In this document: positions 1 to 51,122 of the stretch, piece by piece
Layout: every line of letters starts with the position of its first letter
How positions within the stretch are numbered: position 1 is the first letter of the stretch
IMG/VR virus record: IMGVR_UViG_3300033146_002768
Location: 1-64,000 of that record
DNA: 64,000 nt
Strand: one strand, 5' to 3'
Made by a program: the position numbers and the translations under genes
The notes under the pieces: model-generated
Told to the model about the DNA's origin: nothing
Database searches by the model: none
What the model saw: only the letters and a program-made list of their open reading frames with translations

Positions 1-408
1 TTTGATGGAGACTGCTGCCTTTTATCTATTATATATAAAAAAGAAGAACAAAATATAAAATGTCATATAAGTAAATTATTAGATAATGAAGAATTTGAAT
101 TTATATCTAAACAAGAAAAAAATAATGGAATTATTGTAACTAAATATAAACCAAAAAATAATATATGTATAGAATCTATAGATCCTAAAACTGGTAATAT
201 TGATAACAAAAAAATATCACAATACAGTAGACATGAAAATATAGAAATGTATAAAATAAAAGATAAGAAAAAACGTTTTGAAACATTTTGGTCTTCTTAT
301 GATCATTCATTAATTATATATGATTCTAATAAAGAACAAATAAGGAAAATGAGTCCCAAAGAAGTATTAGAAAATCCAGATGGTAAATTTTTAATTAGGA
401 AAAAATAA
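1..408 (+). CDS. rpoC: RNA polymerase beta' (set 1) N-terminal part, 5'-truncated, ending in the N-half of a split intein
   Basis: Frame +1 is open from base 1 to TAA 406-408 and reads FDGD|CCLLSII...SIDPKTGNIDNKKISQYSRH...WSSYDHSLIIYD...FLIRKK*. FDGD is the end of the catalytic NADFDGD motif. Not in the ORF track. Confidence 0.85.
   Translation, partial: FDGDCCLLSIIYKKEEQNIKCHISKLLDNEEFEFISKQEKNNGIIVTKYKPKNNICIESIDPKTGNIDNKKISQYSRHENIEMYKIKDKKKRFETFWSSYDHSLIIYDSNKEQIRKMSPKEVLENPDGKFLIRKK
13..405 (+). mobile_element. Split intein N-fragment (IntN, 131 aa)
   Basis: Starts with Cys directly after FDGD and contains a block-B-like SYDHSLII (xxDH) motif; ends at a stop codon with no C-terminal splice motif. 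Confidence 0.8.
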
Positions 409-1500
409 ATGAAAAAGTTTGATGTGGAAATTGAAAAAATAAAAAAAGATATTTTATCTGGATTAGAATTTAAAAATATAGTAAAATCTTTTGTTAGAAC
501 TAATAATTTAAACATAGAATTGAAAAAGAGAACAACTTTTTTAGACAACATTTTTTCAAATATTAGAAATATTGATAGATTATGGTTATACATTAATAAT
601 ATTATTAATTATTCACAATTTCCAATATGTGAATATTGTAAAAAAAATAAAGTTAGAATGGAAGTTAATTTTAAAAAAGATATCGGTTTTTCAAAAACTT
701 GTAGTAAAGATTGTGGTATTAAATTAGGTTTATTGAATACAAAATCTCCAGAAGCTATTAAAAAAGCAGAAAAAACTAAAAAGAAAGTTTTAATGGATAA
801 ATATGGCGTTGATCATGTTTCTAAAATATCTGAAGTAAAAATAAAAAAACATAACACAGCTTTAAAAAATTATGGTAGTTTAAAAGCTGCTTATTATGAT
901 ACAGCCAAAAAAACAATTAATGATAAATATAATGTAGATCATGTTTCATTAATTCCTGGAATTAATGAAAAAAAACAAAAAACATCAATAAAACGATATG
1001 GTACTAAATATCCATGGCAATCAGTTAAAGGAAAAGAAAAACAAAAGAACGGGGTTTTAGTAAAATATAACGTTACTAATATTTCAAAATTAGATGAAAT
1101 AAAAGAAAAGAAAAAAGAAACTTATATAAAGCATTATGGAGTTGATAATTACACTAAAACTATAGAATTTATAGAATCAATTAGCGGAGAAAATAATCCT
1201 AATTGGAAAGGTGGTATTTCAAAAAATGAATATTGTGAAATATTTACATTACAAGAGTTTAAAACATTAATTATGGAAAGAGATTTTTGCAAATGTTTGA
1301 ATCCTAGTTGTAATGGGAAATGTAAGAATGATTTAGTTATACATCATATTGATTATAATAAAATGAATTGCAATCTTTTTAATTTAATAACAATTTGTAG
1401 AAGTTGTAATACTATCGCTAATTATGATAGAGAATGGCATAAATCTTGGTATAGTGCTATAATGTTAAAAAGATATAATAAGTGGGGTTTAAATGATTAG
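409..1500 (+). CDS. Free-standing HNH homing endonuclease between the split-intein halves
   Basis: KYG/KYN-type repeats, GENNPNWKGG, and a C-terminal CLNPSC...IHHIDYNK..C...NLITICRSCN HNH motif. Confidence 0.8.
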   Translation: MKKFDVEIEKIKKDILSGLEFKNIVKSFVRTNNLNIELKKRTTFLDNIFSNIRNIDRLWLYINNIINYSQFPICEYCKKNKVRMEVNFKKDIGFSKTCSKDCGIKLGLLNTKSPEAIKKAEKTKKKVLMDKYGVDHVSKISEVKIKKHNTALKNYGSLKAAYYDTAKKTINDKYNVDHVSLIPGINEKKQKTSIKRYGTKYPWQSVKGKEKQKNGVLVKYNVTNISKLDEIKEKKKETYIKHYGVDNYTKTIEFIESISGENNPNWKGGISKNEYCEIFTLQEFKTLIMERDFCKCLNPSCNGKCKNDLVIHHIDYNKMNCNLFNLITICRSCNTIANYDREWHKSWYSAIMLKRYNKWGLND

Positions 1501-1657
1501 TAAAAAAGAACTAATAAAAAATAATATAGAACTAATACCAATTTCTGATTTAAATATTGAATTAGATCCTAATGAAACTATAGCTTATGATTTAACTGTA
1601 GATGATTATTTTACATTTTGTAGTCATGATGGAATTTTTGTACAAGATACTAACTAG
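1493..1657 (+). mobile_element. Split intein C-fragment (IntC, 52 aa, ends ...GIFVQD) followed by +1 Thr of the beta' C-extein
   Basis: ATG 1493 overlaps the HNH stop. Translates MISKKELIKNNIELIPISDLNIELDPNETIAYDLTVDDYFTFCSHDGIFVQD|TN*, with block F (YDLTV) and block G (GIFVQD/T). Not in the ORF track. Confidence 0.8.
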
Positions 1658-2807
1658 CGGCACTTCTTCTGGAGAATTTATTTTTGGTTTATCAAAAGAA
1701 ATGTGGGCTGGTTTATATACAATTTCAAAAGATAAAAAACCTAAAGGGTCTCCAATAGCTGTTTCAAATGAAGATTTATTAACCGCAAAAGATCCTTATA
1801 TAGCTGTTAAATATAGAGGTAATAAAACTACTATGGGGAAAGCTTTAATAAATAGTTGTTTTCCTAAAGATTTAGGTTTTATGGAAGCTCAAGCAACAAA
1901 GAAAACTATTGGAGCAAGAATAGAGCTATCTTATAATAAACATGGTGATGATGTAGTTAAAGCAGTTGTTGATAAATTAAAAGATGTAGGATTTAAATGG
2001 GCTACTATTATGGCTCCTTCTATGAATCTAGATGATTTTGCATTACCTGCATCAGTTATAAAAATTAAAGAAAAATTAAAAACTGCTAATCCAGAAGAAG
2101 CTCAAGATTTGATAGAGCAAGCACAGGTAATATTAGAAAAACATCTAGATAACACTGGGTTTGGAGATTTAGCAAATTCGGGATCAACTAAAGGTTGGGG
2201 TCAGCCAATGCAAATATTAGTTGCAAAGGGTGTTATCGCTGATCCTGATGGTAATGTTTTAGACCCTATATCAGGGTCATTTGCAGATGGTTTATCTAAT
2301 AGAGAATACTTTGACGCATCTCAAGGGGCAAGAAAAGGTATTATTGATAGGGTTATCAATACGGCTGATACTGGTTATATGGCACGTAAATTAGCATATC
2401 TTTTAAACACAGTTGAAGTTGAACGACTTATTAAAGATTGTAGAACTAAAAGAACTGTTGCTATTAAATTAGATGATATTTTAATCAAAAGATTTAAAGG
2501 TAGATATGTAATAAAAAATGGAAAATTAATGTTATTTGATGATGCTAAATTTAAAGTTGGAGATATAGCAAATTTCAGAACTCCTATTTATTGTGAATCA
2601 GAAAAAATATGTCATACTTGTTATGGTAAGTTATTAGAAAGACATCAAACACCTTATGTTGGAATATTAGCAGCACAAATTATTGGGGAACGTGGGACTC
2701 AGTTGATTATGAAAACTTTTCACACGGGTGGTGCCGTATCGCTGATAAAGCGTGATATGCTTGGGGATATCATCAATAATGATCCAATGTCAGGGTTAGA
2801 AAAATAG
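1650..2807 (+). CDS. rpoC: RNA polymerase beta' (set 1) middle part (bridge helix, Zn site, trigger loop); out of frame with IntC
   Basis: GARKGIID..NTADTGYMARKL, CHTCYG, GERGTQLIMKTFHTGG. The track start (1602) overlaps IntC in another frame; homology to the set-2 beta' begins near 1650 (LTSG..GLY). Confidence 0.9.
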   Translation, partial: LTSGTSSGEFIFGLSKEMWAGLYTISKDKKPKGSPIAVSNEDLLTAKDPYIAVKYRGNKTTMGKALINSCFPKDLGFMEAQATKKTIGARIELSYNKHGDDVVKAVVDKLKDVGFKWATIMAPSMNLDDFALPASVIKIKEKLKTANPEEAQDLIEQAQVILEKHLDNTGFGDLANSGSTKGWGQPMQILVAKGVIADPDGNVLDPISGSFADGLSNREYFDASQGARKGIIDRVINTADTGYMARKLAYLLNTVEVERLIKDCRTKRTVAIKLDDILIKRFKGRYVIKNGKLMLFDDAKFKVGDIANFRTPIYCESEKICHTCYGKLLERHQTPYVGILAAQIIGERGTQLIMKTFHTGGAVSLIKRDMLGDIINNDPMSGLEK

Positions 2808-2890
2808 TTTGAGTTACAAACTATATGAAACAGGGGGTTAATAACTTAATTATTTAGAATATATTATAAATCAATATAAGGAGATATAAT

Positions 2891-3174
2891 ATGAAATTAG
2901 TTGAATTGTTAGAAAAAAATTAATTGTTTCTAAAGGTAAAAAGTATTTATGTGGTAGTTGTAATAAATTATTTACTAAAATTGGTATCACAAATCATTAT
3001 TTTTATGCCCATACAGAATCTGGAAGACTTAAAAAAGAAGAAATGAGTCAGAAAGCTAAAATTAAAAATAATACACCAGAAATGAAAAAGAAAATTTCAC
3101 AAGAAACATTAAAAGCATATAATGAAGGAACAGCAAGAGAGAATCATTTAAAAATAGTGCAGTCAAAAAAATAA
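2891..3174 (+). pseudogene. Homing-endonuclease-like remnant with C2H2 zinc finger, frameshifted in an A7 run
   Basis: RBS AAGGAG then ATG 2891 MKLVELLEKN*. The -1 frame continues LIVSKGKKYLCGSCNKLFTKIGITNHYFYAH...PEMKKKIS to TAA 3172-3174. Confidence 0.55.
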
Positions 3175-3186
3175 AGAGGTAATATT

Positions 3187-3462
3187 ATGAATAAACAAAT
3201 AATTTCAATATACATTCAAGAAAATTTTAAAGATAAGCTTCCTACAATTAAAAAAATAAAAACAGAACAACGAAGAATTTATGGAGCTATATATAAATAT
3301 ACAGACTTTTTACCAAAATCAACTTCATTTGCTGAGAGAAGTTATTTATTATCACAAGGTCTTGATAGAAGACCAAAGTGTATGAAATGTGATAAATTAT
3401 TAAAGTTTAAAAGTTATAAAACTGGATATGGTAAAGTATGTTCAAAATCTTGTAAAGGATAA
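3187..3462 (+). CDS. Truncated homing-endonuclease N-terminal Zn-binding domain
   Basis: ERSYLL...PKCMKC...GYGKVCSKSC resembles the N-terminus of the 409 HNH (DRLWL...PICEYC...GFSKTCSKDC). Confidence 0.5.
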   Translation: MNKQIISIYIQENFKDKLPTIKKIKTEQRRIYGAIYKYTDFLPKSTSFAERSYLLSQGLDRRPKCMKCDKLLKFKSYKTGYGKVCSKSCKG

Positions 3463-3466
3463 CTCT

Positions 3467-3760
3467 ATGAAAACCTTAGCTGAAGAATATGTTTTTAAAA
3501 TATTAAAGGAAGCAGTAAAAGTAGGTCAAATAACAAAGACTGGTTTAGTAGCTTCTGCTGTTGGTGGTGGTCTTGTAGGATTAGCTTCTTATTATCTTTA
3601 TAAAAAATATAAACAAGCTCAAGTCAGAGCACAACTGGAAAAAGATCCTTCTAAAAGAAATGAATTAAATGTTAAAGCTAATGATTTAAAACAAAAAGCG
3701 AATAAAACAAAAATGGATGAACAAAAGAAAAAACAATTACAACAACGAATGAAACAATAG
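3467..3760 (+). CDS. Hypothetical protein with one glycine-rich hydrophobic helix and a basic coiled-coil tail
   Basis: AAGGA RBS before ATG 3467; GLVASAVGGGLVGLASYYLY segment. Confidence 0.6.
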   Translation: MKTLAEEYVFKILKEAVKVGQITKTGLVASAVGGGLVGLASYYLYKKYKQAQVRAQLEKDPSKRNELNVKANDLKQKANKTKMDEQKKKQLQQRMKQ

Positions 3761-3770
3761 GCAAGTTAAT

Positions 3771-4484
3771 ATGAAAATTAATAATGTTTTAAAACAAATA
3801 GATCAACAGTTAATATCAATTAAACCGATGACAATAACAATTGATCTTTCAAATTATGATAAGACTAGTTTGAAAGAAACTGAAACTAAGATTTGGGTAA
3901 AATCATTATTAGCATCCGCTGAATATGATAATATTGTTTTTGATATAACATTAGATTATGCTCTTGAATTATTTGTATATGATAGAGAAGATATCGGAAA
4001 AGAATATATTAAATTAAAATATGAAGCTAATGCTCCAGTTTTAGAAGTATCTACAGAAGCTGGTGAATCTGCTGTACAAATTGCTTATGTCGAAAGATTG
4101 ATTGGCGGTAGAGAAATACTAAAAGATGCTGCTCATTTATATAGAAAATTATTTGCTGTATATGGTAAATTATCTAATATGGATTCAGTACATTTAGAAA
4201 TTATGTGTTCACAAGTTTTGAGAGATAAAAAGAATATGCAGATTCCTGCTCGATTAGGAAAGAAGTGGGATCCTATATTAGTTAATTTAAAGAAAGTTAT
4301 TTTTTCAGAAGGGTTTGTTAATGGATTAGCTTTTGAAAATATTAATGATGCTATAAAAACAGGTCTAATAACAGAAGAAAAAGGTGAAGCAAGTATTATA
4401 GAGAAAGTAATGACTGGCAGTTTAGTTGATGAAAAACGAGGAAAAAATTCAAGATTAGGTGATAGAGGTTATAAAAATAGATAG
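3771..4484 (+). CDS. rpoC: RNA polymerase beta' (set 1) C-terminal part
   Basis: VHLEIMCSQVLRD and FVNGLAFEN...TG align with HVHFECVVSQLM and LMGLAFSN...G at the end of the set-2 beta'. Confidence 0.8.
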   Translation: MKINNVLKQIDQQLISIKPMTITIDLSNYDKTSLKETETKIWVKSLLASAEYDNIVFDITLDYALELFVYDREDIGKEYIKLKYEANAPVLEVSTEAGESAVQIAYVERLIGGREILKDAAHLYRKLFAVYGKLSNMDSVHLEIMCSQVLRDKKNMQIPARLGKKWDPILVNLKKVIFSEGFVNGLAFENINDAIKTGLITEEKGEASIIEKVMTGSLVDEKRGKNSRLGDRGYKNR

Positions 4485-4492
4485 GATAAATT

Positions 4493-5353
4493 ATGAGTAA
4501 ATATAAAGGAGATATATTATGTAGTTATGGTTGTGGTCATAAAGCTAAATATTTTTTTACATCAACAAAAAAATATTGTTGCTCATCTCATTTTTCTCAA
4601 TGTCCTATTAGAAGAAAACAATCTAAAAACTATATGACTGGTTTAAGAGTTGGTAATAAAAATCCTAGATATGGTGTAAAAATGAGCAATGAATTAAAAG
4701 AAAAAATACGAAAAGGAAATAAAGAAAATAATTATAATCCAAGTATTAAAACTCGAGAAAAAATGGCTATATCAAGTAAATTATCTATTAAGAATATTAA
4801 TATTAAATATAAATTATTTAGTAAAATAGAGAATTTAAGATATAAACCAGCTCATAAAAAAGAAAAAATAATTCAAGTTAGATGTAAATCTAATAATTGT
4901 AATAAATGGTTTACTCCATCTTATATACAATTATATGAAAGAATAAGAAATATTGAAATCAATGAATTAGATAATTCATATTTTTATTGTTCTGAAAAAT
5001 GTAAAGAAGAGTGTCCTTTATATGGAAAGAGAGTTGAAACTTTAATCAAAGAAGATAAAATAAATGTTGGGCATATAGAGGAATCTTGGTATACTTCTCA
5101 AGAATATCAAACATGGAGAGATCAAGTTTTTAAATTAGATAATAGTAAGTGTGTTTGGTGTAATAAAGAAGCTACGATAGCTCATCATATTTTACCTCAA
5201 AAGATTTATCCAAATCTTAGTTTAGATCCTGAGAATGGATTATCATGTTGTCAAAAATGTCATTATAAATATGGACATCGTGATTCTTTATGTAATACTA
5301 ATCATTTAAGTAAATTAATTTGTGATCGTACTTATAGAATTAAAAATAGATAA
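4493..5353 (+). CDS. HNH endonuclease (CxYGCG N-terminus, NUMOD3-like motifs)
   Basis: CSYGCG, KYCCS, GNKNPRYG, CVWC...AHHILP...NGLSCCQKCH; paralog of 13276. Confidence 0.8.
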   Translation: MSKYKGDILCSYGCGHKAKYFFTSTKKYCCSSHFSQCPIRRKQSKNYMTGLRVGNKNPRYGVKMSNELKEKIRKGNKENNYNPSIKTREKMAISSKLSIKNINIKYKLFSKIENLRYKPAHKKEKIIQVRCKSNNCNKWFTPSYIQLYERIRNIEINELDNSYFYCSEKCKEECPLYGKRVETLIKEDKINVGHIEESWYTSQEYQTWRDQVFKLDNSKCVWCNKEATIAHHILPQKIYPNLSLDPENGLSCCQKCHYKYGHRDSLCNTNHLSKLICDRTYRIKNR

Positions 5354-8070: not shown

Positions 8071-8083
8071 AAGGAATAATATC

Positions 8084-8773
8084 ATGACTACTTTAGAAAT
8101 GCAATATGATTTAAATAATATTATGAATGAATCTAATTATGATGAATTGTTAGAAATTTATAATTCCATAACTAATAATTCTATTTTAACAGAAGGAATT
8201 GCTTCTATTCCTATGAATAAGGCAAAACAAATGTTGAAGAAAATTTCTTCATTTAAAAATCCAAAACAAATGGAATCATTTATTAAATCTAATAAAAAAT
8301 TTGTTAAATCAGAAAAAGATTTAAACGTTAATGTAAAAAAATTAGCTAAGAAATTAAATTATACAGACGCTGAAGTTCAAGCTTCAAGAGTTAGTATTAT
8401 GAAATCTTTAGCTTTAATTTCTCAATTTGCAGGATTAGCTTCATTATTAGGGATTCCTTTAATTATTATTATTATGTTAATTGCAGCAGCTAAAGGTAAA
8501 TCACTATCAGAAGTAACAGATCAAATTTTAGACGATATTAAAGTATCAATTAGAAAAGATGTTAAAGGTCCATACGAAACAAGTATTCAAAATATTATAT
8601 GGGGATTGATTATTTATATAGGTAGTTTGATTGTTATGTTATTAGGTGGAGCTTTAGCTGTTGATGCTATAGTGGCAATAGGAGCTATTGGATTTCTTGT
8701 TGGTTTAATTTTGTTAATTATTTCTGTTATTTCATTTATGTGGACTTTTGTTACAACTCCACTTCGTGACTAA
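8084..8773 (+). CDS. Membrane protein, unknown function
   Basis: About three hydrophobic segments; AAGGA RBS before ATG 8084. Confidence 0.6.
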   Translation: MTTLEMQYDLNNIMNESNYDELLEIYNSITNNSILTEGIASIPMNKAKQMLKKISSFKNPKQMESFIKSNKKFVKSEKDLNVNVKKLAKKLNYTDAEVQASRVSIMKSLALISQFAGLASLLGIPLIIIIMLIAAAKGKSLSEVTDQILDDIKVSIRKDVKGPYETSIQNIIWGLIIYIGSLIVMLLGGALAVDAIVAIGAIGFLVGLILLIISVISFMWTFVTTPLRD

Positions 8774-8786: not shown

Positions 8787-9140
8787 ATGTATAATTATAA
8801 AGCAATAATTACAAGAGTTGTTGATGGTGATACTTATGATGCTGAAATAGATTTAGGGTTTAATATAAAAGTTAAACAAAGACTAAGATTAAAAGATGTT
8901 GATACTCCTGAAACATGGAGACCTAAAACTGAATCAGAGAGAGCACATGGAATGAAAGCATCTCAATATGTAATGGAATTAATTGAAGGTCAACAAGTAA
9001 CATTAACTTCAGTTAAATCAGCAGTATATTCAAGATATGAAGCATACATTGAAATTAAAGGATATGATTTAGGAACATTAATTACAGAACATGGATTTAC
9101 TAAATTAGATAAATACGAGGATATAAATGATTCAATTTAA
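8787..9140 (+). CDS. Thermonuclease (SNase-like) family nuclease
   Basis: RVVDGDT, RL..VDTPE motifs. Confidence 0.85.
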   Translation: MYNYKAIITRVVDGDTYDAEIDLGFNIKVKQRLRLKDVDTPETWRPKTESERAHGMKASQYVMELIEGQQVTLTSVKSAVYSRYEAYIEIKGYDLGTLITEHGFTKLDKYEDINDSI

Positions 9141-12100
9141 AGCGTTAAAACCGTATGCACATGTTGTTAATGGAGTACGATTTCCTCAAAGTATGAAGAC
9201 TCCATTTATAATAGTTTACTTTAGTGAAAATTCATCGCTGATGGATGATTATTCAAAGTTGAATATGGTTCGTGTTGATGCTAAAAAAGTTATTATTCCT
9301 AAAACTAAAATTCCATTTAGCTTTATTACTCCAGAAACTAAAAAAGCATATAAAGCTCATGGATTAGTTGCTTCTAGTTCGACACAAGCAATACCTCAAG
9401 GACAGAATTTAATATATGATCTTAGTTTATTCTTACAAACTCTTGAGGATGCGTATAAAAGTAAAAACTATAGAGCAAGAAGTGGATTTATATTAAAAAA
9501 TTTAATAAGTAAGATATTTAATTCATTCCCAAGTAACTATCAAAAAGTATTTATGTATTCAGTTGATGCTACTAAAGAGGTTAATAAATATATAGATAGA
9601 AAGATATTCCCTTTTATATTAGAAATGAAAAAGAATAATATTTATTATGATCATTTTGTAATGAATACTATTAGCGGATCTTCATCAAGATATAGATTAC
9701 TAATGAAAGACAGATCACTTAATTTCAATAAAGCTAATCTATATTTAAAAAATATTAAAATAATTGATACAGATGAAGAAGTTGATAATAAAGTGGAGGT
9801 AGCATCTAATACAGTTGTTAAGAAAATATCAGATGAAATTAGATCTTCTAATAAAAAAGTATTCAAACAATCCATTCAGAAATTTCTTGAAAAGAATCCT
9901 AAAGCGTTGGAAAAAACACATAATGGAGAAATTTCTGATAATGAGGCTAAAGATATTGCTATAGCATCTGTTCTATATAGATCAACTGGTGATATGAATA
10001 AAGCTAAAATAACAGCTAAAAATATTCCTGGTATCAAAAAATCTATTGGGTTAAAAGTTATTGATAAAAGGTTCGCTGATGAATTACTTCAACCTCAAAA
10101 AACAGAATTAACATCTGAAAAGTTAGTTGTTCAAATGCATAATGTTGCTAAAGCTGTAGGTAATAAATCTCCAGAGCATATTTTTGAAAAAAGAAAAATT
10201 GATTTTGAGACTAATTTAAAGAAAGATATTGTTAATTCATTTAAAGTATTAGAAACTAAAGGTGTTCCTTTAAAGTTTAAAAGTGTTAAAGTTATTAAAA
10301 AAGCAGTTAGACATGGTGATTTATCTCCATCAGATATTAGTACTATTCATGTAACTTTAGTTGATAAATTTAATAGAACACATACTGTATTAATTGATGT
10401 ACCAAATGTATCGGATGATGGAACATTTAAAATTAATGGTAAAAAGAAATGTCTTATTAATCAATTAGTACTATGTCCTATAACATTTCCTAAAAAATTA
10501 GATAGTAAATTTGAAAGTTCTTATTCAACATTCCATATTTGGAGTAAGAGAACTAAGAGGGAACAATATTTAGAAGCTTATATTGGATCGTATAAAGTCC
10601 CATTATTAGTATTGTTATCTTTCTCATTTGGGTTTAAAGAGACGTTAAAATTATATGATATTAGGTATAAGTTAACCGATATAAAACCTGATAAAGAGGT
10701 CAAATGGACTGTTAAAGTTGATGATAACAACTGGTTATTATTTGATAATATAAACAATAAATTAAAAGAAGAGATAATTCAATCTCTTATTCATACCGAT
10801 TTATATTCATATAAAGATAAAATAAAAAACGGTGAATTATTTAGCCATGAATATTTTAATAACTTAATTATTAAAATGTCAGGTCGTATTAATTCAACAT
10901 TCTTAATTCAATCAAACCTTGAAAACATTGTTGATCCTGTTGCTAAGCAAGTATTAATTAATAAACAACTACCAAGTGATTTATATTTAATTATGCAATA
11001 TATGTCAACTAAGGTTGTTGAAGGATATACTCAAAAGAGAAATGATATATCTAATCAAAGAATAAGAAACTCTGAGGTTATAGTTCATTTAGCTCAAAAA
11101 CAAATTCTAGCAGCTCATACTGAGTATAAAGAGCAAGTGTTATCTGGTAATAAAAAAGCTATTTTTGATATTTCTCAAACTAAAGTATTAAGTGATTTTA
11201 TTAACTCTGAAATTGTTGCTGATATGGAGTATGCAAATCCTATTGAGGAAATGGCTACCAAAACAAGAGTATCACCAGTAGGTAAAGCAGTAGGTGGGAT
11301 TCCTGATAAACAAGCTATCCAAAATGAGGGTAGAAATGTACATGATTCTATGTTTGGAAATATTGATACCCTTGATACACCAGAAGGTGAAAATGTTGGT
11401 ATTGTACAGCAGTTAACAGTTGATGCTTTTATAACATCAGCAAGGGGTATCATTCAAACTAAAGATAAAAAAGAAGGCGAAAACTCTGGTTTGTTATCTA
11501 CAACAGCTGCTCAAATTCCATTTGTTGAAAATAATGATGGTAACAGAGTTATGTTTGGGTGTAGTCAAATGAGACAGGCAGTCCCTTTAAGAAATCCAGA
11601 GACTCCAATGATTCAATCAGGGTATGAATCTATATTAACAAGCGTTTTATCAAGTGATTTTATTAAAAAAGCACCATGTAATGGAAAAGTAACAAGAGTT
11701 ACAAAAGATGAAATATCTATTAAATGCACCAGTGGCGGTAATAAAGTAATCCCAATCATTCCAGTTCATCTAAGATCAGGTTCTGGTAAAGATACATTGA
11801 GTGTTTTTAAACCAACAGTTAAACCTGGTAGTGTTGTAAAAACTAAACAAATTATAGCAGAAGGGTCTTGTATAACTGGTGGTTCTATTGCAACAGGAAG
11901 AAGTATGTGTGTTGCTTTAATGCCTTATAAAGGATTTAACTTTGAAGATGGTATTGTTATATCTGAAAGAATAGTTCGTGAAGGTGTTTTAAATTCATTA
12001 CATGGTATTGTTGAAGAAATTGAAATAGGTAAAGATGATAGAGTTGTATTTATAAATGAACTTGGTAAAGAAACTATTAAAGGTGAACCGCTTATAAGAA

Positions 12101-13227
12101 AAAGTATCGGTGAAATTGAGCAGCTAATTGGGTTTGAAGAAGAGGAAGAAGGAATTGAAGTTGTTTCTGGACATATGATTAAAAAATCTCCTGGTGGTAA
12201 AATTGTTGATATAGAAGTATTTAATAATTTAAAAGAAGGTAAATTTCCTGAACTTGATGCTTTATCTAAAAAGACTAGAAAAAGATATGGATTACTTCCT
12301 AAAGAAAAGTTTTCACAAAAAGGAGAAGTAATTAAAGGCATATTAATAAAATTCAAACTTGAACAAGAACTTCCTGTTGGTATTGGGGATAAATTAACTA
12401 ATAGACATGGAGCGAAAGGTATTGTTTCCTTAATTGAAAAAGATGAATTAATGCCAAGAACTTCAACTGGAGATCAAGTAGATATTATTTTAAACCCAAT
12501 TGGAGTAGTTGGACGTATGAATGTTGGTCAGTTATATGAATTATATACTGGACTAATCGCTAAAGAACTTGGTAGACAAATAATAAAACTTAATAATAAA
12601 GTTAAGATCGGTACATTATTAAATAAAGTTTTACCTCTTTTAGATATGACAAAAAATAAAGAGTTTAGTAAAACTTTTATTGCTAAATTTAGAGCTATGT
12701 CTGATTCTAAATTTAAATTATTTGTTAAACAAGTTAAAGATTCTGATTCATATACTATTATTATACCACCATTTAAAGCGCCTGCATATAAAGAGATATT
12801 AGCTGCATTGAAGGTTCTTGGTTTAAAAGGTGGATATAATTTAATGTTGCCAGAGTTTAATACAAGAACAAAGAGTAAAGTTCCATTAGGTTATATGTAT
12901 ATATTAAAATTAGAACATATAGCGAAAGACAAGTTGCACGCTCGTTCTACTGGTCCGGTTACTAGTAAAACTTTTCAGCCAACAGCTGGGAAAAAAAGAG
13001 AGGGTGGACAGAGAATGGGAGAACTTGATACTTACTCATTTATAAGCTATAATTGTCCAAACTTACTAGCAGAATTTTTTGGTCCTTTGTCTGATGATCA
13101 TATTACAAAAAATGAAATTTTATCAGATATTATACAAACAGGAGCCGCTAAATATCGTACTCCAAAAGCATCTCCAGTAAGAGATTTACTTAATAGTTAT
13201 TTTATAAGCTTAATGATATGGCGTTAG
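9127..13227 (+). CDS. rpoB: RNA polymerase beta subunit (set 1) with a long N-terminal extension
   Basis: DTPEGENVG, QMRQAVPL, GFNFEDG, GDKLTNRHGAKG, RMNVGQ, KLEH, GGQRMGELD. Confidence 0.95.
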   Translation: MIQFKALKPYAHVVNGVRFPQSMKTPFIIVYFSENSSLMDDYSKLNMVRVDAKKVIIPKTKIPFSFITPETKKAYKAHGLVASSSTQAIPQGQNLIYDLSLFLQTLEDAYKSKNYRARSGFILKNLISKIFNSFPSNYQKVFMYSVDATKEVNKYIDRKIFPFILEMKKNNIYYDHFVMNTISGSSSRYRLLMKDRSLNFNKANLYLKNIKIIDTDEEVDNKVEVASNTVVKKISDEIRSSNKKVFKQSIQKFLEKNPKALEKTHNGEISDNEAKDIAIASVLYRSTGDMNKAKITAKNIPGIKKSIGLKVIDKRFADELLQPQKTELTSEKLVVQMHNVAKAVGNKSPEHIFEKRKIDFETNLKKDIVNSFKVLETKGVPLKFKSVKVIKKAVRHGDLSPSDISTIHVTLVDKFNRTHTVLIDVPNVSDDGTFKINGKKKCLINQLVLCPITFPKKLDSKFESSYSTFHIWSKRTKREQYLEAYIGSYKVPLLVLLSFSFGFKETLKLYDIRYKLTDIKPDKEVKWTVKVDDNNWLLFDNINNKLKEEIIQSLIHTDLYSYKDKIKNGELFSHEYFNNLIIKMSGRINSTFLIQSNLENIVDPVAKQVLINKQLPSDLYLIMQYMSTKVVEGYTQKRNDISNQRIRNSEVIVHLAQKQILAAHTEYKEQVLSGNKKAIFDISQTKVLSDFINSEIVADMEYANPIEEMATKTRVSPVGKAVGGIPDKQAIQNEGRNVHDSMFGNIDTLDTPEGENVGIVQQLTVDAFITSARGIIQTKDKKEGENSGLLSTTAAQIPFVENNDGNRVMFGCSQMRQAVPLRNPETPMIQSGYESILTSVLSSDFIKKAPCNGKVTRVTKDEISIKCTSGGNKVIPIIPVHLRSGSGKDTLSVFKPTVKPGSVVKTKQIIAEGSCITGGSIATGRSMCVALMPYKGFNFEDGIVISERIVREGVLNSLHGIVEEIEIGKDDRVVFINELGKETIKGEPLIRKSIGEIEQLIGFEEEEEGIEVVSGHMIKKSPGGKIVDIEVFNNLKEGKFPELDALSKKTRKRYGLLPKEKFSQKGEVIKGILIKFKLEQELPVGIGDKLTNRHGAKGIVSLIEKDELMPRTSTGDQVDIILNPIGVVGRMNVGQLYELYTGLIAKELGRQIIKLNNKVKIGTLLNKVLPLLDMTKNKEFSKTFIAKFRAMSDSKFKLFVKQVKDSDSYTIIIPPFKAPAYKEILAALKVLGLKGGYNLMLPEFNTRTKSKVPLGYMYILKLEHIAKDKLHARSTGPVTSKTFQPTAGKKREGGQRMGELDTYSFISYNCPNLLAEFFGPLSDDHITKNEILSDIIQTGAAKYRTPKASPVRDLLNSYFISLMIWR

Positions 13228-43538: not shown

Positions 43539-43587
43539 TTTATGAAATTGTATCATATATAATATGAAACAAATTGGAGTGAATGAA

Positions 43588-45290: not shown

Positions 45291-48011
45291 ATGCCAACAT
45301 TATTAAATTTTGAAGAATTTTGTGAAGATTTGAAAGAGATAACTACAACCAAGTATCTTAATAAAAAACAATTTCATCCAGAAGGATTGTTTTCAGAACA
45401 GATATTTGGTCCATCTAAAAACTATACATGCCAGTGTGGAACATATTGGGGAATTTCTGGATCAGGTGGTACTTGTGCAACATGTGAAGTTGATGTTGTA
45501 AATAGCAATGTTAGACGTAAAAGATTTGCTAAGATAATTCTACCAGTTCCAGTTGTTAATCCATTATTCTATGATCTTGTTTGTGATCTTGGCGGACGTC
45601 AGGTCAAAGCTGCTTTAGATCAACTCATGAAAGATGAGAATAGTATAATGATTTTTGATGAAGAAGAGCAAGAATGGCTTGTAGAAAAACAAGATCCAGA
45701 GAATATTGATAGAAATGCTTTAGTTGGAACAAATGCAATTCAAGTTTTGATTGAAGATTTGACTGATGCAGTATTAGCAGCAGGTGATACAACTTGGGAA
45801 GTTATTAAAGATAATATTGATCAATTGATTATAAGTCATGTTGTTGTTCTTCCTCCTGATTTAAGACCAGCTTCTAAAAAGGTTAGTCGAAAAGGTCAGG
45901 TATCATCTGATAAAATCAATAGATTTTATACTCAGATATTAACAAAGAAAGAAGCATTTGCTGAAACTAATTGTGATGTTAGAGTTGATAGAAATTTATA
46001 TTATAATTACTATCGACAATTACAAAAAGATGTTAATGAACTTTATGCATTTATACTTGAGAAAATGTCAAAAAAAGAAGGATTGATTCGTGGTAATATT
46101 CTTGGTAAGCGAATTGATTTCTCTGGTAGAGCAGTAATTGTTCCTGATCCAACTTTAAATATGGATCAATGTTCATTACCATACTTGATGTTTCTTGAAT
46201 TATTTAAGTTGAAAATTGCAAAGAAAATTATTGATCTTGGTAGATTTAAAAAGATTAATAATGCAATTGATTTTATTGATGATTGTATTGAGATTAATAA
46301 TCCTGTATTATTTAATACTTGTGAAGAGATTGCTGTAGATGAAGTATGTATTTTAAATCGTCAACCTTCTTTGCATAGATTAAGTTTATTGGGATACAGA
46401 ACCAAAGTTTCTTTAGATAAAGTTATTAAGATTCACCCTCTTTCATGTCCTCCATTTAATGCGGATTTTGATGGTGATCAAATGGCTGTATATATTCCAA
46501 TCAGTGAAGAAAGTAAACAAGAAGTATTAGATAGATTACTAGTTATTAGAAATCTAACTAACCCTTCAAATGGTAGTTTGTCAACCACACCAAGTCAAGA
46601 TGTTATACTTGGACTATATGCTGTGTCTCATGAAGTATTTGAAGATTTACAGTATGATGTTGAATGTAAAGGTAAAACGATTAAAGCTGATAGAGCTTTA
46701 TTGAATGATTGTTTTCCAGAAGATTATCCAGTTATTGATGAACATGTTGGCGGAAAAAGAATTAAAGAAATTTTAAGTGATATAAATTTCAGATATTCAA
46801 ATGAAATAACAGCAGATGTGTTGGATAAGATTAAGTTCCTTGGTTTTAAATACTCCACATTATTTGGAGCAACACTTTCATTAGATGAAATGTTCATAGA
46901 AGGTTGTTATGAAAAACGTGATTCATTATATGCGGGTGAAACAATAATGGAACAGTTAGAGATGGTATCTAATGATGAAACAACTCAATATCTTAGAGAT
47001 AATTTTAATTATGCTTATATGGTAGAGTCTGGTGCCAGAGGTAGTTGGGATCAGGTAAGACAGATAGTATTAACTCGAGGTTTCATCTCAAATTTTAGAG
47101 GTGAAATTATTGAAAGACCGATTAAACATAGTTTCATAAATGGTCTTACTCCTCAAGAGTTCTTTGATTCAACTAATGGTAGCCGTAAAGGATTACTTGA
47201 TGTTGCATTGAATACTGGTACATCTGGATATCTATCAAGAAAGTTAATCTTTACCTGCGCTAATCTTCAAATTGATAGAACATTTGATGATTGCGGAACA
47301 ACTGATCTTCTTCAAGTATTTGTTGATAATGAGAAGAAAGCTAAAATGTTAATCGGTAAACATTTTATGGAAAGTGGTAATCTTATTAAAATGACTGAGT
47401 ATAACTATCTTGGTTATGTTGGTAAGACAATTGAAATTAGAAGTCCTATATTTTGTAAAAATGATAAGGTTTGTAAAACTTGTTATGGTGAATTACATGA
47501 AGTAATTGATACTGATTTTATTGGGGTAATTGCAGCTCAGAGTCTTGGGGAATGTAATACTCAGTTGGTATTGAGAACTTTTCATACATCAGGTGTTGCA
47601 GTTGTTGGTAAGAATAATGAAGATGGTTCTAATGATATGAAACAACAGGATATTGTTGCTGATTTATCTACAGTATCAAAACTTCTTCATAAATTTCCAA
47701 AAGATACAACTCCAGCAGCTTTGGTTGCCAAATTATATACTTGTTATAACAGTAGTAGAACTATTCATCATGTTCATTTTGAATGTGTTGTGTCTCAGTT
47801 GATGTGGTTTGGTACTTCTAAATGGAGATTAGTTGACAATAGAGAGAATGTTGTACCTAAGTACCTTTCTGTTCAAACTGTCCCATCAAATGAAAGTTGG
47901 CTAATGGGATTAGCATTCTCTAATCCAAAGAAGCATATAATCAAGGGTATTTTAGAATCTGGTTTATATCATGGAGTTATGGATAAAATACTCTGTGGAG
48001 AAGAAGTTTAA
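45291..48011 (+). CDS. rpoC: RNA polymerase beta' subunit (set 2), intact
   Basis: GLFSEQIFG, CQCG..CATC, PP.LRP, GKRIDFSGR, NRQPSLH, NADFDGDQM, TSGYLSRKL, RTFH. Confidence 0.97.
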   Translation: MPTLLNFEEFCEDLKEITTTKYLNKKQFHPEGLFSEQIFGPSKNYTCQCGTYWGISGSGGTCATCEVDVVNSNVRRKRFAKIILPVPVVNPLFYDLVCDLGGRQVKAALDQLMKDENSIMIFDEEEQEWLVEKQDPENIDRNALVGTNAIQVLIEDLTDAVLAAGDTTWEVIKDNIDQLIISHVVVLPPDLRPASKKVSRKGQVSSDKINRFYTQILTKKEAFAETNCDVRVDRNLYYNYYRQLQKDVNELYAFILEKMSKKEGLIRGNILGKRIDFSGRAVIVPDPTLNMDQCSLPYLMFLELFKLKIAKKIIDLGRFKKINNAIDFIDDCIEINNPVLFNTCEEIAVDEVCILNRQPSLHRLSLLGYRTKVSLDKVIKIHPLSCPPFNADFDGDQMAVYIPISEESKQEVLDRLLVIRNLTNPSNGSLSTTPSQDVILGLYAVSHEVFEDLQYDVECKGKTIKADRALLNDCFPEDYPVIDEHVGGKRIKEILSDINFRYSNEITADVLDKIKFLGFKYSTLFGATLSLDEMFIEGCYEKRDSLYAGETIMEQLEMVSNDETTQYLRDNFNYAYMVESGARGSWDQVRQIVLTRGFISNFRGEIIERPIKHSFINGLTPQEFFDSTNGSRKGLLDVALNTGTSGYLSRKLIFTCANLQIDRTFDDCGTTDLLQVFVDNEKKAKMLIGKHFMESGNLIKMTEYNYLGYVGKTIEIRSPIFCKNDKVCKTCYGELHEVIDTDFIGVIAAQSLGECNTQLVLRTFHTSGVAVVGKNNEDGSNDMKQQDIVADLSTVSKLLHKFPKDTTPAALVAKLYTCYNSSRTIHHVHFECVVSQLMWFGTSKWRLVDNRENVVPKYLSVQTVPSNESWLMGLAFSNPKKHIIKGILESGLYHGVMDKILCGEEV

Positions 48012-48035: not shown

Positions 48036-51000
48036 TTGACTATAGAAAATCCGATATATAAAGTTGGCGATGAAAGAAATCATATCTTTAGTATTCGACA
48101 GCAAGAGTATGCAGCTCTTTTGGAGAATGTACGACAGATACTGATCCCAGCAGAAGAATTAGGATTTGATCTAGTAGAATATAGATTGAAAGAGCCTAGA
48201 TTTTCAAACGGTGAAATTTGTAAAACAATTAAAAAGAACCTTATTATAAGGTTTCAGAAAGGTACCTCAAAGATTGATTTATCAATGCAAGTTCCTACAT
48301 TGATAAATGATAACTATATTGTTATTAACGGAAGACAGAAAATACCATTATTTCAGTTGTTCGATATTCCTATTGTTACAAGAGGGAAGAGTATTAAGAT
48401 AAGAACAAATGTTGCAACATTAATGATATTTCCACAAAAAGAAGCGCCATATATCTATATCAGCATTTTGGGTAGAAAAGTTCCTTTACACCTTATAATG
48501 TTTGGTTATTATGGAATTGAAGAAATGAATGAACGTTTTGGTCTATCTGATATGGCTGATGCGCCAATGGTTGATAATTTGGATCCAAAAGATCCAAGGT
48601 TACTTTATACAAAATTAATCTATGATTTAAAAATGTTTTATGATGATTCAAGAGGAATAACTCAAGATGATATCATAAAAGAGATTGGGAGAAATTATTC
48701 TCAATACAATGCTAAATCTAAAGGTGAAGATATAATTTATGCTATAGATTTAATTTTGAAAGTAGATCCTATTTCAGCCGAGTTCTTTGAAACTGGAAAT
48801 CTCCTTGATGAAATTGTTAAAACATTAGATGATGGTTATCTTGATGATACTCTTTTGACGAATAAAAGAATTAGATGTTTTGAATATGTTGTATTAGCAA
48901 AAATATCCAAAGCAGTATTTGATATGTGTATGTCAAATAGAACAGCAAGACAACCTAAATTCAATGTTAACTCAACTATGATATTATCTGAGTGTAATGT
49001 ATCTGACATTGTCCAATTTGATTTTGCTATAAATCCAATTGATGAATTAACTAAGTTAAGCAGGACTAGTTTAGTTGGTCCTGGAGGTTTTAATCGACAG
49101 AATGTCCCAGAACATTTAAGGGATATTATGCCAAGTATGTTTGGTAGGTTGTGTCCTGTAGATACTCCTGATAGAGATAATTGTGGTGTTCTACAAAATT
49201 TGATTCCAAATGTTCCTCTTGATGATAATGGTAGATTTAATGAATATTATCTTGAGAAACAACCTATATCAATTCCAGTATCTTTAGTACCATTTCTGGA
49301 ACATGATGACCAGACAAGATTACAAATGGCATCTTCACAAATGAGACAAGCAATTATGTTACAAAACTTTGACCAACCAATGATTAAATCTGGTTGTGAA
49401 AGTTTATATACTAAATATACTCAGTTTGTTAAGATTGCAAAGAAATCCGGAAAAGTTATACATCTGGATAGTAATTACATTATCGCTTTATACGATGATA
49501 AAACAATTGATATATTTGATGTTACATATAGAAAAATCTATATATCAAATTTAGATGTATTTAATGTATATGTTAAACATGGTGACAAATTTAATGCTGG
49601 AGATATTTTAGCAGAAAGTAATTTTTGTAAAGATGGTAGCATTAATATTGGAAAAAATCTTCTAACTGCAGTTATGGTTTATTATGGCTACAATTATGAG
49701 GATGGAATTATCATATCAGAGAGACTTCAGAAAGAAGGGGTTTTCACATCTGTTCATTTTGAGGATATGTCGTTTGATATTCCAATGAGTAAAGTTCTTC
49801 TAACTTTAGATGATAAAGGAAGTTATATGCCGATTCCTAAAGTTGGAGATAGAATTGCTAAAGGACAACCTTATGCAATTATGAAAGAATTTCCAAATCA
49901 ACAAATGGACTTCTTTGATATATTTAAAGAAGAACAGAAGAAACTATCCAAACAAAATGTTATTATTACTGAGGTTAATTTATATGTGAATCAATGGTGC
50001 ACAGATATACCTCAGTACAATGATTGGGTTGAAAAAATCATTAAGGAACAACAAGATGAAGAGTTAAAAATTAAGATTATAATTGAAGAAAATCTTGAAA
50101 AAGATAAGGTCAAGAATTTCATCAAACAAAATAATCTTGACTTGTTTGATAACGTAGGAAAATTTAAAATGAAGGGTGAAGAAATCCCTGGTATTAGAGT
50201 TGAAATGTTTGGAATCTTTTTTAGACCTATTCAGATTGGGGATAAAATAGGCAACAGACATGGTAATAAAGGTGTAATTTCAAATATTATACCTCATGAG
50301 AAAATGCCAATGTTACCCGATGGAAGACATGCTGACATAATTGTAAATCCTTTAGGTACTATTTCAAGGATGAATGTTGGGCAATTGTTTGAATATCATA
50401 TGGGGATGTCTTTATATGATCTTAAAGTTCATATGAAAAAGATTATTAAAAAAGAAGATGAATCAGTTAAAGCTCATAGCTTATCTGAAAATCAAATTCA
50501 ATTACTTGTTAAAGAATATGTTATTGGTTATATAAATATTATTGATAACTCAGATGATAAATGGTATCTTGAACAATTTGAGGAACAATTGCCAGATGTA
50601 ATTGATGAAAAATGGATAGAAGAATTGTCTATTATTCAACCTCCATTTGAGTCAGTAAATATGATTAAAATAAGAGAAGCATTGTCTTATACAGGTACTC
50701 AATTTAAGTATGATATTTTTGATCCTCAATCTGATAAAATGATTCAACAACAAATAGCTTGTGGTTATGGTTATTTCTTTAAGATGGTTCATATTTCCGA
50801 AACACGATTAGCTGCAAGAGGTATTGGGTCATATGCAAGAAAGACTCTGCAACCATTAGCTGGTCGTAAGAATAAAGGTGGTCAAAGATGTGGTGAAATG
50901 GAAACTGCTGCATTAATTGGACATGGAGCTGTTGTTAATTTAAGAGAATTTTTAACAACTAAATCTGATTGTATTGATCTTAAAAATAGATATATTAGAG

Positions 51001-51122
51001 ATCAATTAGATTCTAATTTGGGTAAGGTTGATGATGAAGCTGAAGAAGATTCTATTGTTCCAGAATCAGTTAAACTATTACATGCAAATTTAATTGCATT
51101 AGGATTAAAAAGAGAGGATTAA
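48036..51122 (+). CDS. rpoB: RNA polymerase beta subunit (set 2)
   Basis: CPVDTPD, QMRQA, GYNYEDG, GDKIGNRHGNKG, SRMNVGQ, GGQRCGEME. Confidence 0.96.
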   Translation: MTIENPIYKVGDERNHIFSIRQQEYAALLENVRQILIPAEELGFDLVEYRLKEPRFSNGEICKTIKKNLIIRFQKGTSKIDLSMQVPTLINDNYIVINGRQKIPLFQLFDIPIVTRGKSIKIRTNVATLMIFPQKEAPYIYISILGRKVPLHLIMFGYYGIEEMNERFGLSDMADAPMVDNLDPKDPRLLYTKLIYDLKMFYDDSRGITQDDIIKEIGRNYSQYNAKSKGEDIIYAIDLILKVDPISAEFFETGNLLDEIVKTLDDGYLDDTLLTNKRIRCFEYVVLAKISKAVFDMCMSNRTARQPKFNVNSTMILSECNVSDIVQFDFAINPIDELTKLSRTSLVGPGGFNRQNVPEHLRDIMPSMFGRLCPVDTPDRDNCGVLQNLIPNVPLDDNGRFNEYYLEKQPISIPVSLVPFLEHDDQTRLQMASSQMRQAIMLQNFDQPMIKSGCESLYTKYTQFVKIAKKSGKVIHLDSNYIIALYDDKTIDIFDVTYRKIYISNLDVFNVYVKHGDKFNAGDILAESNFCKDGSINIGKNLLTAVMVYYGYNYEDGIIISERLQKEGVFTSVHFEDMSFDIPMSKVLLTLDDKGSYMPIPKVGDRIAKGQPYAIMKEFPNQQMDFFDIFKEEQKKLSKQNVIITEVNLYVNQWCTDIPQYNDWVEKIIKEQQDEELKIKIIIEENLEKDKVKNFIKQNNLDLFDNVGKFKMKGEEIPGIRVEMFGIFFRPIQIGDKIGNRHGNKGVISNIIPHEKMPMLPDGRHADIIVNPLGTISRMNVGQLFEYHMGMSLYDLKVHMKKIIKKEDESVKAHSLSENQIQLLVKEYVIGYINIIDNSDDKWYLEQFEEQLPDVIDEKWIEELSIIQPPFESVNMIKIREALSYTGTQFKYDIFDPQSDKMIQQQIACGYGYFFKMVHISETRLAARGIGSYARKTLQPLAGRKNKGGQRCGEMETAALIGHGAVVNLREFLTTKSDCIDLKNRYIRDQLDSNLGKVDDEAEEDSIVPESVKLLHANLIALGLKRED

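Follow-up and report, generated by a model that had tools for sequence, protein, structure and literature searches.

Two diverged beta/beta' RNA polymerases in an uncultured jumbo phage, with a putative split intein at the catalytic motif of one beta' subunit

We describe here two multisubunit RNA polymerases (RNAPs) encoded in bases 1-64000 of a 207,111-bp linear IMG/VR record (IMGVR_UViG_3300033146_002768; JGI sample 3300033146, Ga0366841_1000030), a stretch of 64,000 nucleotides that we refer to as the window. Each polymerase is represented by a beta/beta' pair, set 1 and set 2, and the set 1 beta' gene is interrupted at two places, once at its catalytic motif and once at its trigger loop. 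The contig (G000) is a fragment with a CheckV completeness of 66%, and its genes for a terminase large subunit, baseplate wedge, tail sheath, major head protein and portal, all situated outside the window, point to an uncultured tailed phage of the jumbo class with a contractile, myovirus-type tail.

Two polymerase gene sets and their relatives

The two beta/beta' pairs are recognizable by their Pfam domains and are 28-29% identical to each other (Table 1), as an initial interpretation of the bare nucleotide sequence (the sequence-only reading) had proposed. Set 2 is organized just as that reading described, with intact beta' and beta genes lying side by side, and the set 1 beta gene is likewise intact. 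The two beta proteins share 29% identity across about 1000 residues, and set 1 beta has an additional N-terminal stretch of about 340 aa relative to set 2 beta. The NADFDGD Mg-binding motif is invariant in our alignment (A1), and of set 1 beta' the contig retains only the FDGD of this motif and Rpb1 domains 3 and 5, the full set of domains being present in relatives L010 and L013. There is no second Rpb1_2 match anywhere on the contig, and the N-terminal segment of set 1 beta', about 370 residues, therefore lies off it. As had also been claimed, neither pair is accompanied by recognizable accessory subunits, and no match to Sigma70_r2, bacterial alpha or omega/Rpb6 domains was found across the whole 207-kb contig. 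A PHROGs search of 20 open reading frames (ORFs) neighbouring both sets, which bears on the suggestion of sigma-like folds near ORFs 44938, 14766 and 52928, returned nothing related to RNAP, with phiKZ gp68 and AR9 gp226, which represent the fifth, promoter-specificity subunit of non-virion RNAPs, not used as queries. We also note that set 2 beta' has an N-terminal Cys-rich, Zn-ribbon-like segment (CQCGTY...C..C) at residues ~45-70 (window ~45420-45500; A1 columns ~43-70), which is missing from the set 1 beta' of the relatives, from the N-terminal pieces of phiKZ/AR9-type virion RNAPs and from some non-virion ones.

Table 1. Features of the two RNAP gene sets, in window coordinates.
Feature	Position	Strand	Remarks
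End of set 1 beta' N-extein	1..12	+	FDGD of NADFDGD; contig begins here; translation FDGD, then CCLLS
Putative split-intein N-half (IntN)	13..408	+	131 aa and stop; residue 1 Cys; block-B-like SYDHSLII
Free-standing HNH homing endonuclease	409..1500	+	Between the intein halves; Pfam DUF7487 (1.9e-20), HNH_3
Putative split-intein C-half (IntC) ORF	1493..1657	+	MISKKEL...AYDLTVDDYFTFCSHDGIFVQD-TN-stop; no longer fused to C-extein
Set 1 beta' middle piece	1602..2807	+	Pfam Rpb1_5 (1e-21), Rpb1_3; domains 3 to 5 up to trigger loop TFHTGGA
Junction of apparent 65-nt deletion	1649..1653	+	ACTA microhomology; DNA and protein comparison with L009 and L013
Spacer at trigger-loop split	2808..3770	+	ORFs 3187-3462 (Zn-ribbon-like) and 3428-3760 (transmembrane, Lys-rich)
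Set 1 beta' C-terminal piece	3771..4484	+	237 aa, own ATG; aligns with set 2 beta' 808-903 and L010 beta' 793-1004
HNH endonuclease gene between set 1 beta' and beta	4493..5353	+	Weak Pfam HNH match
Set 1 beta	9127..13227	+	1366 aa, intact; Pfam Rpb2_6 (9e-51), Rpb2_3
NUMOD3-containing homing endonuclease	13276..14370	+	Pfam NUMOD3 (1.2e-30); directly 3' of set 1 beta
Set 2 beta'	45291..48011	+	906 aa, intact, NADFDGD; Pfam Rpb1 domains 1-5
Set 2 beta	48036..51122	+	1028 aa, intact, adjoins set 2 beta'; Pfam Rpb2_3, Rpb2_6, Rpb2_7

Seven loci were identified in IMG/VR with the set 1 beta' middle piece as query, and the clade is known solely from metagenome contigs: the source contig, these seven related loci and one marine-sediment Logan contig. 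Two of the loci (L010 and L011) encode set 1 beta' as a single 1004-aa ORF directly abutting a 1363-aa beta, and in L006 to L009 it is encoded by a 780-aa ORF and a 238-249-aa ORF, with the break at the trigger loop, about 20 residues past TFHTGGA, and spacers of 264 to 683 bp. The proposal that the subunits are largely unsplit thus holds for the clade. Set 2 beta' is intact in all five related records searched (903-909 aa, 57-84% identical) and lies 35-40 kb from set 1 in each. This presence of both sets in five of five related contigs indicates that a two-polymerase program, as first suggested, is a conserved trait of the clade, and that the contig is not chimeric. A further record filed as a giant-virus metagenome-assembled genome (L012, IMGVR_UViG_GVMAG-S-1006661-62_000001) matches the set 1 beta' trigger-loop region with 52% identity over 31 residues, and some bins of 'giant viruses' may contain phages of this kind.

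Interruptions of the set 1 beta' gene

The sequence-only reading placed set 1 beta' in three pieces, two of which (1602-2807 and 3771-4484) are indeed parts of the subunit. The third, 1-408, contributes four codons of beta' and is otherwise the putative IntN, so that the arrangement is not a simple gene split. At the catalytic site the relatives without the intein read NADFDGD followed directly by TMAIYHPLT; in the window, FDGD is followed by C-CLLSIIY...SYDHSLII... up to the stop at 408, and the translation of 1-408 has no similarity to beta'. A search with this translation identified a sequence 59% identical to it that is fused to the beta' N-extein of L013. This relative appears to preserve the fractured gene intact and in order, with the N-extein up to NADFDGD continuing into S-CLCSIIY...SYDHSLIV... 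and a stop (L013 4894-6411), an HNH gene (6398-7468), and an ORF (7469-9529) that begins MLTKQ and passes without interruption from GYDLTVEDNYTFASSDGVFVQD into TMAIFHPIT... and the remainder of beta'. The window has the counterparts of all three elements, with its HNH ORF 51% identical to the L013 ORF in the same position and its IntC alignable to that of L013 up to the junction of GYDLTVEDNYTFASSDGVFVQD with TMAIFHP, but its IntC is not fused to an extein.

Several features of these segments are consistent with a split intein. Position 1 is occupied by Cys in the window and by Ser in L013, SYDH resembles the TxxH of block B, and the +1 residue in L013 is Thr. The NCBIfam model for the intein C-terminus (TIGR01443, intein_Cterm) scores 15.7 bits with L013 and 13.6 bits with the window, the cut-off being 15.6. 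In complex predictions the L013 IntN and IntC are modeled as binding to each other with an ipSAE of 0.78, compared with 0.00 for the best control, and with 240-252 contacts, at least 86% of which are shared among runs; the pLDDT of the partners is at least 78, and the 0.78 mark is reached by 51 of 78 solved complexes and by two of 108 mismatched pairs. The AlphaFold model of IntN alone (pLDDT 46) is too poor for a fold search, and a PDB sequence search with IntN found nothing relevant. Because the element is lacking in L006, L008, L009 and L010, where NADFDGDTMA... is uninterrupted, its distribution is sporadic; no other public contigs with the same intein end were found, and relatives of the HNH protein are at most 46% identical and are not at this site. 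We interpret the first break, from these sequence comparisons, as a split intein in a fractured-gene layout. The insertion site is about 50 residues upstream of the canonical phiKZ/AR9 beta' split, and it therefore does not directly explain that split.

The junction downstream of the window IntC is unusual. In the relatives, (T)MAIYHPLTNEAQEEARTRMMK lies between FDGD, or the intein end, and LTSGTSS, and the window instead reads ...GTACAAGATACTA joined to ACTAGCGGC..., which fits a loss of 65 nt between two ACTA tetramers. The deletion shifts the frame of the C-extein, such that IntC ends in TN-stop and the next ORF starts from an internal ATG (1602), with its first 16 codons unrelated. An independent view of the junction is provided by Logan contigs of run X1, which is not the source sample, compared with window positions 1-5000. 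An X1 contig of 1147 nt matches 937-1652 with four differences in 716 nt (99.4%), has 86 letters at the junction in place of the 21 of the window, a net gain of 65 nt, and then matches 1674-2017 with 51 differences. The window junction would thus seem to be the odd one out, the X1 sequence having the length expected from the relatives. Since the element is 99.4% identical but the adjoining extein is only 85% identical, recent lateral movement of a near-identical HNH/IntC element by homing into a diverged extein fits these data. A second X1 contig spans 1-962 and stops 19 nt upstream of base 1, and both the source and X1 assemblies therefore break at the intein site, as expected if several strains share the element and differ in its flanks. 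The set 1 beta' copy of this contig is probably either damaged or mis-assembled.

Comparison of set 1 with L009 gives ratios of nonsynonymous to synonymous substitution rates (dN/dS) of 0.107 (beta' middle piece), 0.131 (beta' C-terminal piece) and 0.139 (beta). These ratios suggest strong purifying selection on set 1, and any inactivation would have to be very recent.

The second break is of a different kind. Homology of the middle piece begins at nucleotide 1650, corresponding to residue 396 of the 780-aa protein of the relatives, and this piece is 86% identical to L009 and 28% identical to residues 423-769 of set 2 beta'. It ends ...DPMSGLEK-stop and the C-terminal piece begins MKINNVLKQ..., and the two abut at residues homologous to those of the unsplit L010 protein (...DPIADLD-MSTLKKY...), with no remnants of an intein. 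The stop and a conserved ATG are at the homologous residue in all four split genomes (the window, L006, L008 and L009), and a small transmembrane or Lys-rich ORF occupies the spacer in each. Both spacer ORFs of the window are kept in L009 (61% identity for 3187-3462 and 38% for 3428-3760); the Zn-ribbon ORF is present in the window and L009 and has marginal similarity to an endonuclease N-terminus (E 0.004). In our reading, the trigger-loop break truly divides beta' between two genes, as in other 'genes in pieces'. In AR9, the virion beta' C piece (g264) ends about 18 residues past the FH of its trigger loop, and our 237-aa piece weakly matches AR9 g125, a 248-aa 'virion protein' (E 0.0045; 16.8 bits against a profile). 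In phiKZ-type virion RNAPs the C-terminal-most region of beta' is likewise a separate small protein, a homologue of gp244 of Salmonella phage SPN3US (PMC7598289), and the sub-clade of the window appears to be split at almost the same place as the small virion beta' C protein of AR9 and phiKZ. Since splits occur in the outgroup and in one sub-clade but not in the other, parsimony does not decide between an ancestral and a convergent origin.

Homing endonucleases are concentrated in the set 1 operon. The HNH gene between beta' and beta has no counterpart in L010 and L008, where beta' abuts beta, and it is a paralogue (38% identical) of the NUMOD3-containing gene 3' of beta, such that one copy is situated on each side of set 1 beta; the latter also weakly matches a family of group I intron endonucleases. 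The window as a whole has an unusual density of homing-type endonuclease genes (409-1500, 4493-5353, 13276-14370, 21227-22060 and 35843-36826), which include HNH and NUMOD3 types and a weak GIY-YIG match. A small staphylococcal-nuclease-like ORF (8787-9140; SNase, 6.6e-7) overlaps the start of set 1 beta, and ORFs of the same size (118-119 aa) are at the same place in L006 (12913-13272) and L009 (13277-13633), their equivalence being judged by size and place alone; L010 and L008, with beta' and beta abutting, have no such ORF.

Virion and non-virion counterparts

Both sets were compared with the proteins of phiKZ, AR9 and three other phages, and the matches were read with the record annotations. 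The N-terminus of set 1 beta' matches AR9 g145, the virion beta' N piece (3e-31), and phiKZ gp180, a head protein (4.5e-17), with no match to phiKZ gp55 at E<=0.01; that of set 2 beta' matches AR9 g270 and phiKZ gp55, both non-virion, with no match to AR9 g145 or phiKZ gp180 at the same threshold. The N half of set 1 beta matches the virion proteins AR9 g189 and phiKZ gp178 and does not match AR9 g105 at E<=0.01, and the N half of set 2 beta matches the non-virion AR9 g105 and also part of AR9 g189 (3e-14) and phiKZ gp178 (1.9e-7). Reciprocal best matches pair set 1 with AR9 g145 and g189 and phiKZ gp180 and gp178, and set 2 with AR9 g270 and g105 and phiKZ gp55. These four set 1 counterparts, AR9 g145 and g189 and phiKZ gp180 and gp178, all have an annotation as a virion or head protein, as does AR9 g125.

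For phylogenetic analysis, pieces of virion (v) and non-virion (nv) RNAPs were gathered by profile search from phiKZ, AR9, Staphylococcus phage S6, Yersinia phage phiR1-37 and Vibrio phage vB_pir03. The tree of the beta' N half groups set 1 with the vRNAPs (87/85) and leaves the position of set 2 open. The tree of the beta N half groups set 2 with the AR9 nvRNAP (g105; 96) and set 1 with the vRNAPs (95), the latter group including a long YerA41 branch. In the concatenated tree (995 columns, with E. coli and S. aureus as outgroup) set 1 groups with the vRNAPs and set 2 with the nvRNAPs, with Shimodaira-Hasegawa-like approximate likelihood ratio test (SH-aLRT) supports, from a quick search, of 97 and 99. 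Rows of the beta and concatenated trees retain their beta' labels (phiKZ gp180 + gp178, AR9 g145 exon 1 + g189, AR9 g270 + g105, rpoC + rpoB), and nvRNAP beta rows are left out for four phages in which those pieces were not detected. The length of the N-terminal extension preceding the first beta homology follows the same pattern, being 335 aa in set 1 and 413-536 aa in the virion beta of S6, phiR1-37, AR9 and phiKZ, and about 0-70 aa in set 2 and the AR9 nv protein. In genomic context, set 1 of a related contig (L036) is just downstream of genes for a baseplate hub (a weak match), a PAAR protein (a faint match) and an amidase, and set 2 is situated among ThiF-like, radical-SAM, AAA_33 and GTP-cyclohydrolase genes. 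Together these observations support set 1 as the counterpart of the virion RNAP and set 2 as that of the non-virion RNAP. The assignment made by the sequence-only reading therefore stands as to lineage, and packaging of set 1 in the virion we infer from this kinship.

The explanation that we regard as probable for the locus as a whole is a two-RNAP design of the phiKZ/AR9 type with basically one gene per subunit, in which set 1 beta' has been broken by mobile elements and the particular copy here is likely damaged or mis-assembled. By this explanation, set 1 would be made late, packaged and injected to transcribe the early genes, and set 2 would be made early and would transcribe the middle and late genes, both operating without alpha, omega or sigma. 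In intein-bearing genomes the intein halves would bring the two halves of beta' together for ligation by protein trans-splicing, and the trigger-loop pieces would presumably assemble non-covalently, without being joined, by analogy with other genes in pieces. More tentatively, and with somewhat less than even confidence, we propose that the clade is sister, in unsplit form, to the virion as well as the non-virion RNAPs of phiKZ/AR9-type phages, and that its unsplit, intein-fractured and two-gene states show fragmentation under way.

A number of results weigh against this explanation. The roughly 370 residues of set 1 beta' missing from the contig correspond to the clamp and most of the catalytic barrel, and the window junction is without about 21 codons that are conserved in the relatives; with this essential-looking beta' segment gone, set 1 may be non-working in this genome. 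The intein itself departs from expectation in that IntN scores 12.6 bits with TIGR01445, below the cut-off of 24.5, Pfam finds no intein domain in either half, and the last intein residue is Asp rather than Asn. A terminal Asp is a known but rare variant among inteins. No RNA run among public runs contains the stretch, and the sole public run with part of it is a marine-sediment metagenome. Upstream regions yielded no late-promoter-like motif for either set, nor for set 1 in the relatives, and a hidden Markov model built from six set 1 sequences detected no similarity between the N-terminal extension of set 1 beta and the virion beta extensions. Finally, the branches of phiKZ and AR9 are long, and forcing set 1 and set 2 into a single clade costs 25.7 log-likelihood units in the concatenated tree and is rejected only marginally by the approximately unbiased (AU) test (p-AU 0.038), whereas with beta' alone a lineage-specific duplication is not rejected (p-AU 0.26).

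These last results leave some room for the two sets having arisen by duplication, inside the clade, of one unsplit RNAP like those of the Caudovirales that encode a multi-subunit RNAP (mReC), in which case the v and nv labels would not transfer. The two sets are indeed about as distant from each other as from other phage RNAPs, and the beta' N tree on its own accommodates them as a clade. We nonetheless consider this unlikely, as the beta' and beta trees each place set 1 with the vRNAPs, the beta tree places set 2 with the nvRNAPs, the concatenated tree supports both placements, and AR9 g145 and phiKZ gp180 match only set 1 while AR9 g105 and phiKZ gp55 match only set 2. Moreover, long-branch attraction would be expected to draw the v and nv branches together, not apart. 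A different suggestion, that the contig is a chimera of two phages with one RNAP each, is compatible with its origin from a metagenome assembly that breaks at the intein, and yet we find it scarcely credible, since five independently assembled relatives from other samples have both sets at similar distances and both the GC content and its skew are uniform along the window.

That set 1 in this particular genome is a recently inactivated relic, with a real deletion, an orphaned IntC, a beta' short of part of its active-site fold, and a phage that is either defective or copes without set 1, is a possibility to which we give nearly even weight. The deletion and frameshift are present in the contig sequence, the independent X1 assembly of the same element has a junction 65 nt longer, and a 4-nt microhomology would seem too short for a mis-join through the k-mer overlap of an assembler. 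Set against this, the other set 1 frames are all open and have the low dN/dS values given above, which limits inactivation to a very recent event at most, and the assemblies visibly break at the mobile element, both in the contig and in the first X1 record. The breaks in beta' could also be thought to be self-splicing group I introns with endonuclease genes, with the mature mRNA encoding one beta' protein; the vRNAP and nvRNAP genes of AR9 are annotated as joins of two to six exons with HNH or Hef endonucleases inside, and the window is rich in homing endonucleases. However, no Rfam intron model matches, whether the whole window is scanned at the gathering threshold or window 1-4600 and the L006 spacer are scanned at E up to 10; in L013 the HNH gene is flanked by intein-like, protein-coding sequence in the reading frame of the exteins; and the trigger-loop break has its stop and conserved ATG at a homologous residue in all four genomes split there. 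Introns are thus a very improbable explanation, and we favor an intein at the first break and two separate genes at the second.

Some further features of the contig are of note. Upstream intergenic regions show a roughly 12-fold enrichment of a motif of about 15 nt, (A/G)GAACATAT(T/A)ATAAAT, whose sites mostly fall where the structural genes are, at ~89-195 kb of the contig (e.g. 97041(-), 124010(-), 135382(-), 175394(-), 175596(-) and 192935(+)), with a single site in the window, at 63331(+). Its AACA core and AT-rich stretch resemble the AR9 late promoter recognized by the non-virion RNAP, AACA-N6-T-A/G (PMC5449584), and a T4-late-like TATAAATA is also part of it. An ORF of about 195 aa 3' of set 1 beta includes a sequence close to TTAGAACATATAATAAAGAC (window 15259, L006 18168, L008 16775, L009 20054, L010 16409); the copies differ at one or two positions, share the GAACATA core with the above motif, and may represent either an internal promoter or mere conservation of coding sequence. 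The window has a GC content of about 29%, every large ORF lies on its + strand, and no tRNAs were found. A search of the contig for chimallin (phiKZ gp54), a protein of the nucleus-forming Chimalliviridae, by tblastn and phmmer detected no homologue (best E 0.17), with the contig 66% complete and chimallin diverging fast. Among the ORFs of the window are three that are radical-SAM-like, two that are ThiF-like and one for GCHY-1 (type 2 GTP cyclohydrolase I) (5368-8070, 34717-35865, 41322-42002, 43564-44463 and 51824-52669), and their domain names suggest, as a guess, a pathway for modification of nucleotides or DNA bases, perhaps of the 7-deazaguanine kind. Elsewhere on the contig, giant ORFs of 2579 and 2377 aa adjoin a 1300-aa virion-structural-like ORF (100973-115878 (-) and 154376-161512 (-)), and there are two Nol-like carbamoyltransferase genes as well.

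Comparison with known polymerases and fractured genes

The first break resembles the fractured genes described by Dassa et al. in 2009 (PMC2677866), in which a conserved enzyme gene of an environmental phage is also broken at a catalytic motif. It differs in that those genes encode eight enzymes of DNA synthesis and repair whereas the gene here encodes RNAP beta', the text of that report making no mention of RNA polymerase, and in that the endonuclease is of an HNH/DUF7487 type rather than GIY-YIG or Vsr-like, although the same authors predicted that HNH enzymes could serve in fractured genes (PMC2677866). The terminal Asp of the intein and the damaged window junction are further departures. 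We know of no earlier report of a split intein in the catalytic subunit of a multisubunit RNAP. The new split-intein pair might, if active, offer a tool for protein ligation. The trigger-loop break is closer to the nrdA gene of Aeromonas phage Aeh1, which is split by an HNH gene (PMC2677866); both have adjacent collinear ORFs, no intein remnants and small inserted genes, although the insertions here encode a small membrane-type protein and a Zn-ribbon ORF and include no intact endonuclease. That unsplit, split-intein-fractured and two-gene states of beta' are seen side by side in close relatives is new. The clade thereby records successive states of gene fragmentation by mobile elements and, if our explanation is correct, provides a living model of how selfish endonucleases break the polymerases of jumbo phages into pieces.

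The mReC phages (Weinheimer and Aylward 2020, PMC7481178) offer a second point of comparison. These are 97 contigs of metagenomic tailed phages, some of them jumbo-sized, with full-length beta and beta' that fall outside the cellular RNAPs, much as in the clade described here. The text of that study mentions neither phiKZ nor the presence of two RNAPs in one genome, and a 2020 review notes that its authors left the jumbo-phage RNAPs out of their trees (PMC7598289).

The closest overall likeness is to the phiKZ-like (Chimalliviridae) and AR9/PBS1-like phages, which also have two RNAPs per genome composed of beta and beta' alone, without alpha, omega or sigma. The long N-terminal extension of the virion-type beta is common to both, as are the separate small C-terminal piece of beta' (in the window sub-clade, and AR9 g125 and SPN3US gp244; PMC7598289) and, with AR9, the targeting of RNAP genes by homing endonucleases. 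Protein identity is nonetheless low, the closest phage records in INPHARED being about 30% identical at most to either polymerase. The interruptions of the AR9 genes are group I introns, which together with their endonucleases were already known in AR9-type RNAP genes (bioRxiv 10.1101/2020.12.14.422802), whereas the interruption at the catalytic motif here is putatively a split intein. The virion RNAP lineage has been described as having beta and beta' in at least five polypeptides, with a common beta' split after the double-psi beta-barrel (DPBB) (PMC7598289). Set 1 departs from this description, as its beta is one 1366-aa ORF and its beta' breaks in the window are after FDGD and at the trigger loop; the canonical post-DPBB split is absent from the clade, a single gene encodes beta in both sets and beta' in set 2, as well as set 1 beta' in some relatives, and the genes for beta' and beta lie next to each other and are not scattered.

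These differences bear on the origin of the phage enzymes. Reviews describe the choice between a duplication and two acquisitions of the v and nv RNAPs, and the reason for the splits, as unknown (PMC7598289, PMC13282480). If the clade is a sister lineage as tentatively proposed, the v/nv duplication predates the divergence of these groups, and if the tree is right, the common post-DPBB split of beta' arose twice, after the duplication, and was not inherited from a cyanobacterium-like donor, which bears on the idea of a cyanobacterial origin discussed in PMC7598289. A sister clade with unsplit, adjacent pairs makes the origin of the v and nv enzymes testable by phylogeny and comparison of split sites, and RNAPs of both types in two polypeptides should be far easier to express and solve than the four- and five-piece enzymes of phiKZ and AR9. 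Relative to those phages, it is a clade with both the v-type and the nv-type enzyme unsplit, and with beta' and beta adjacent, that is new.

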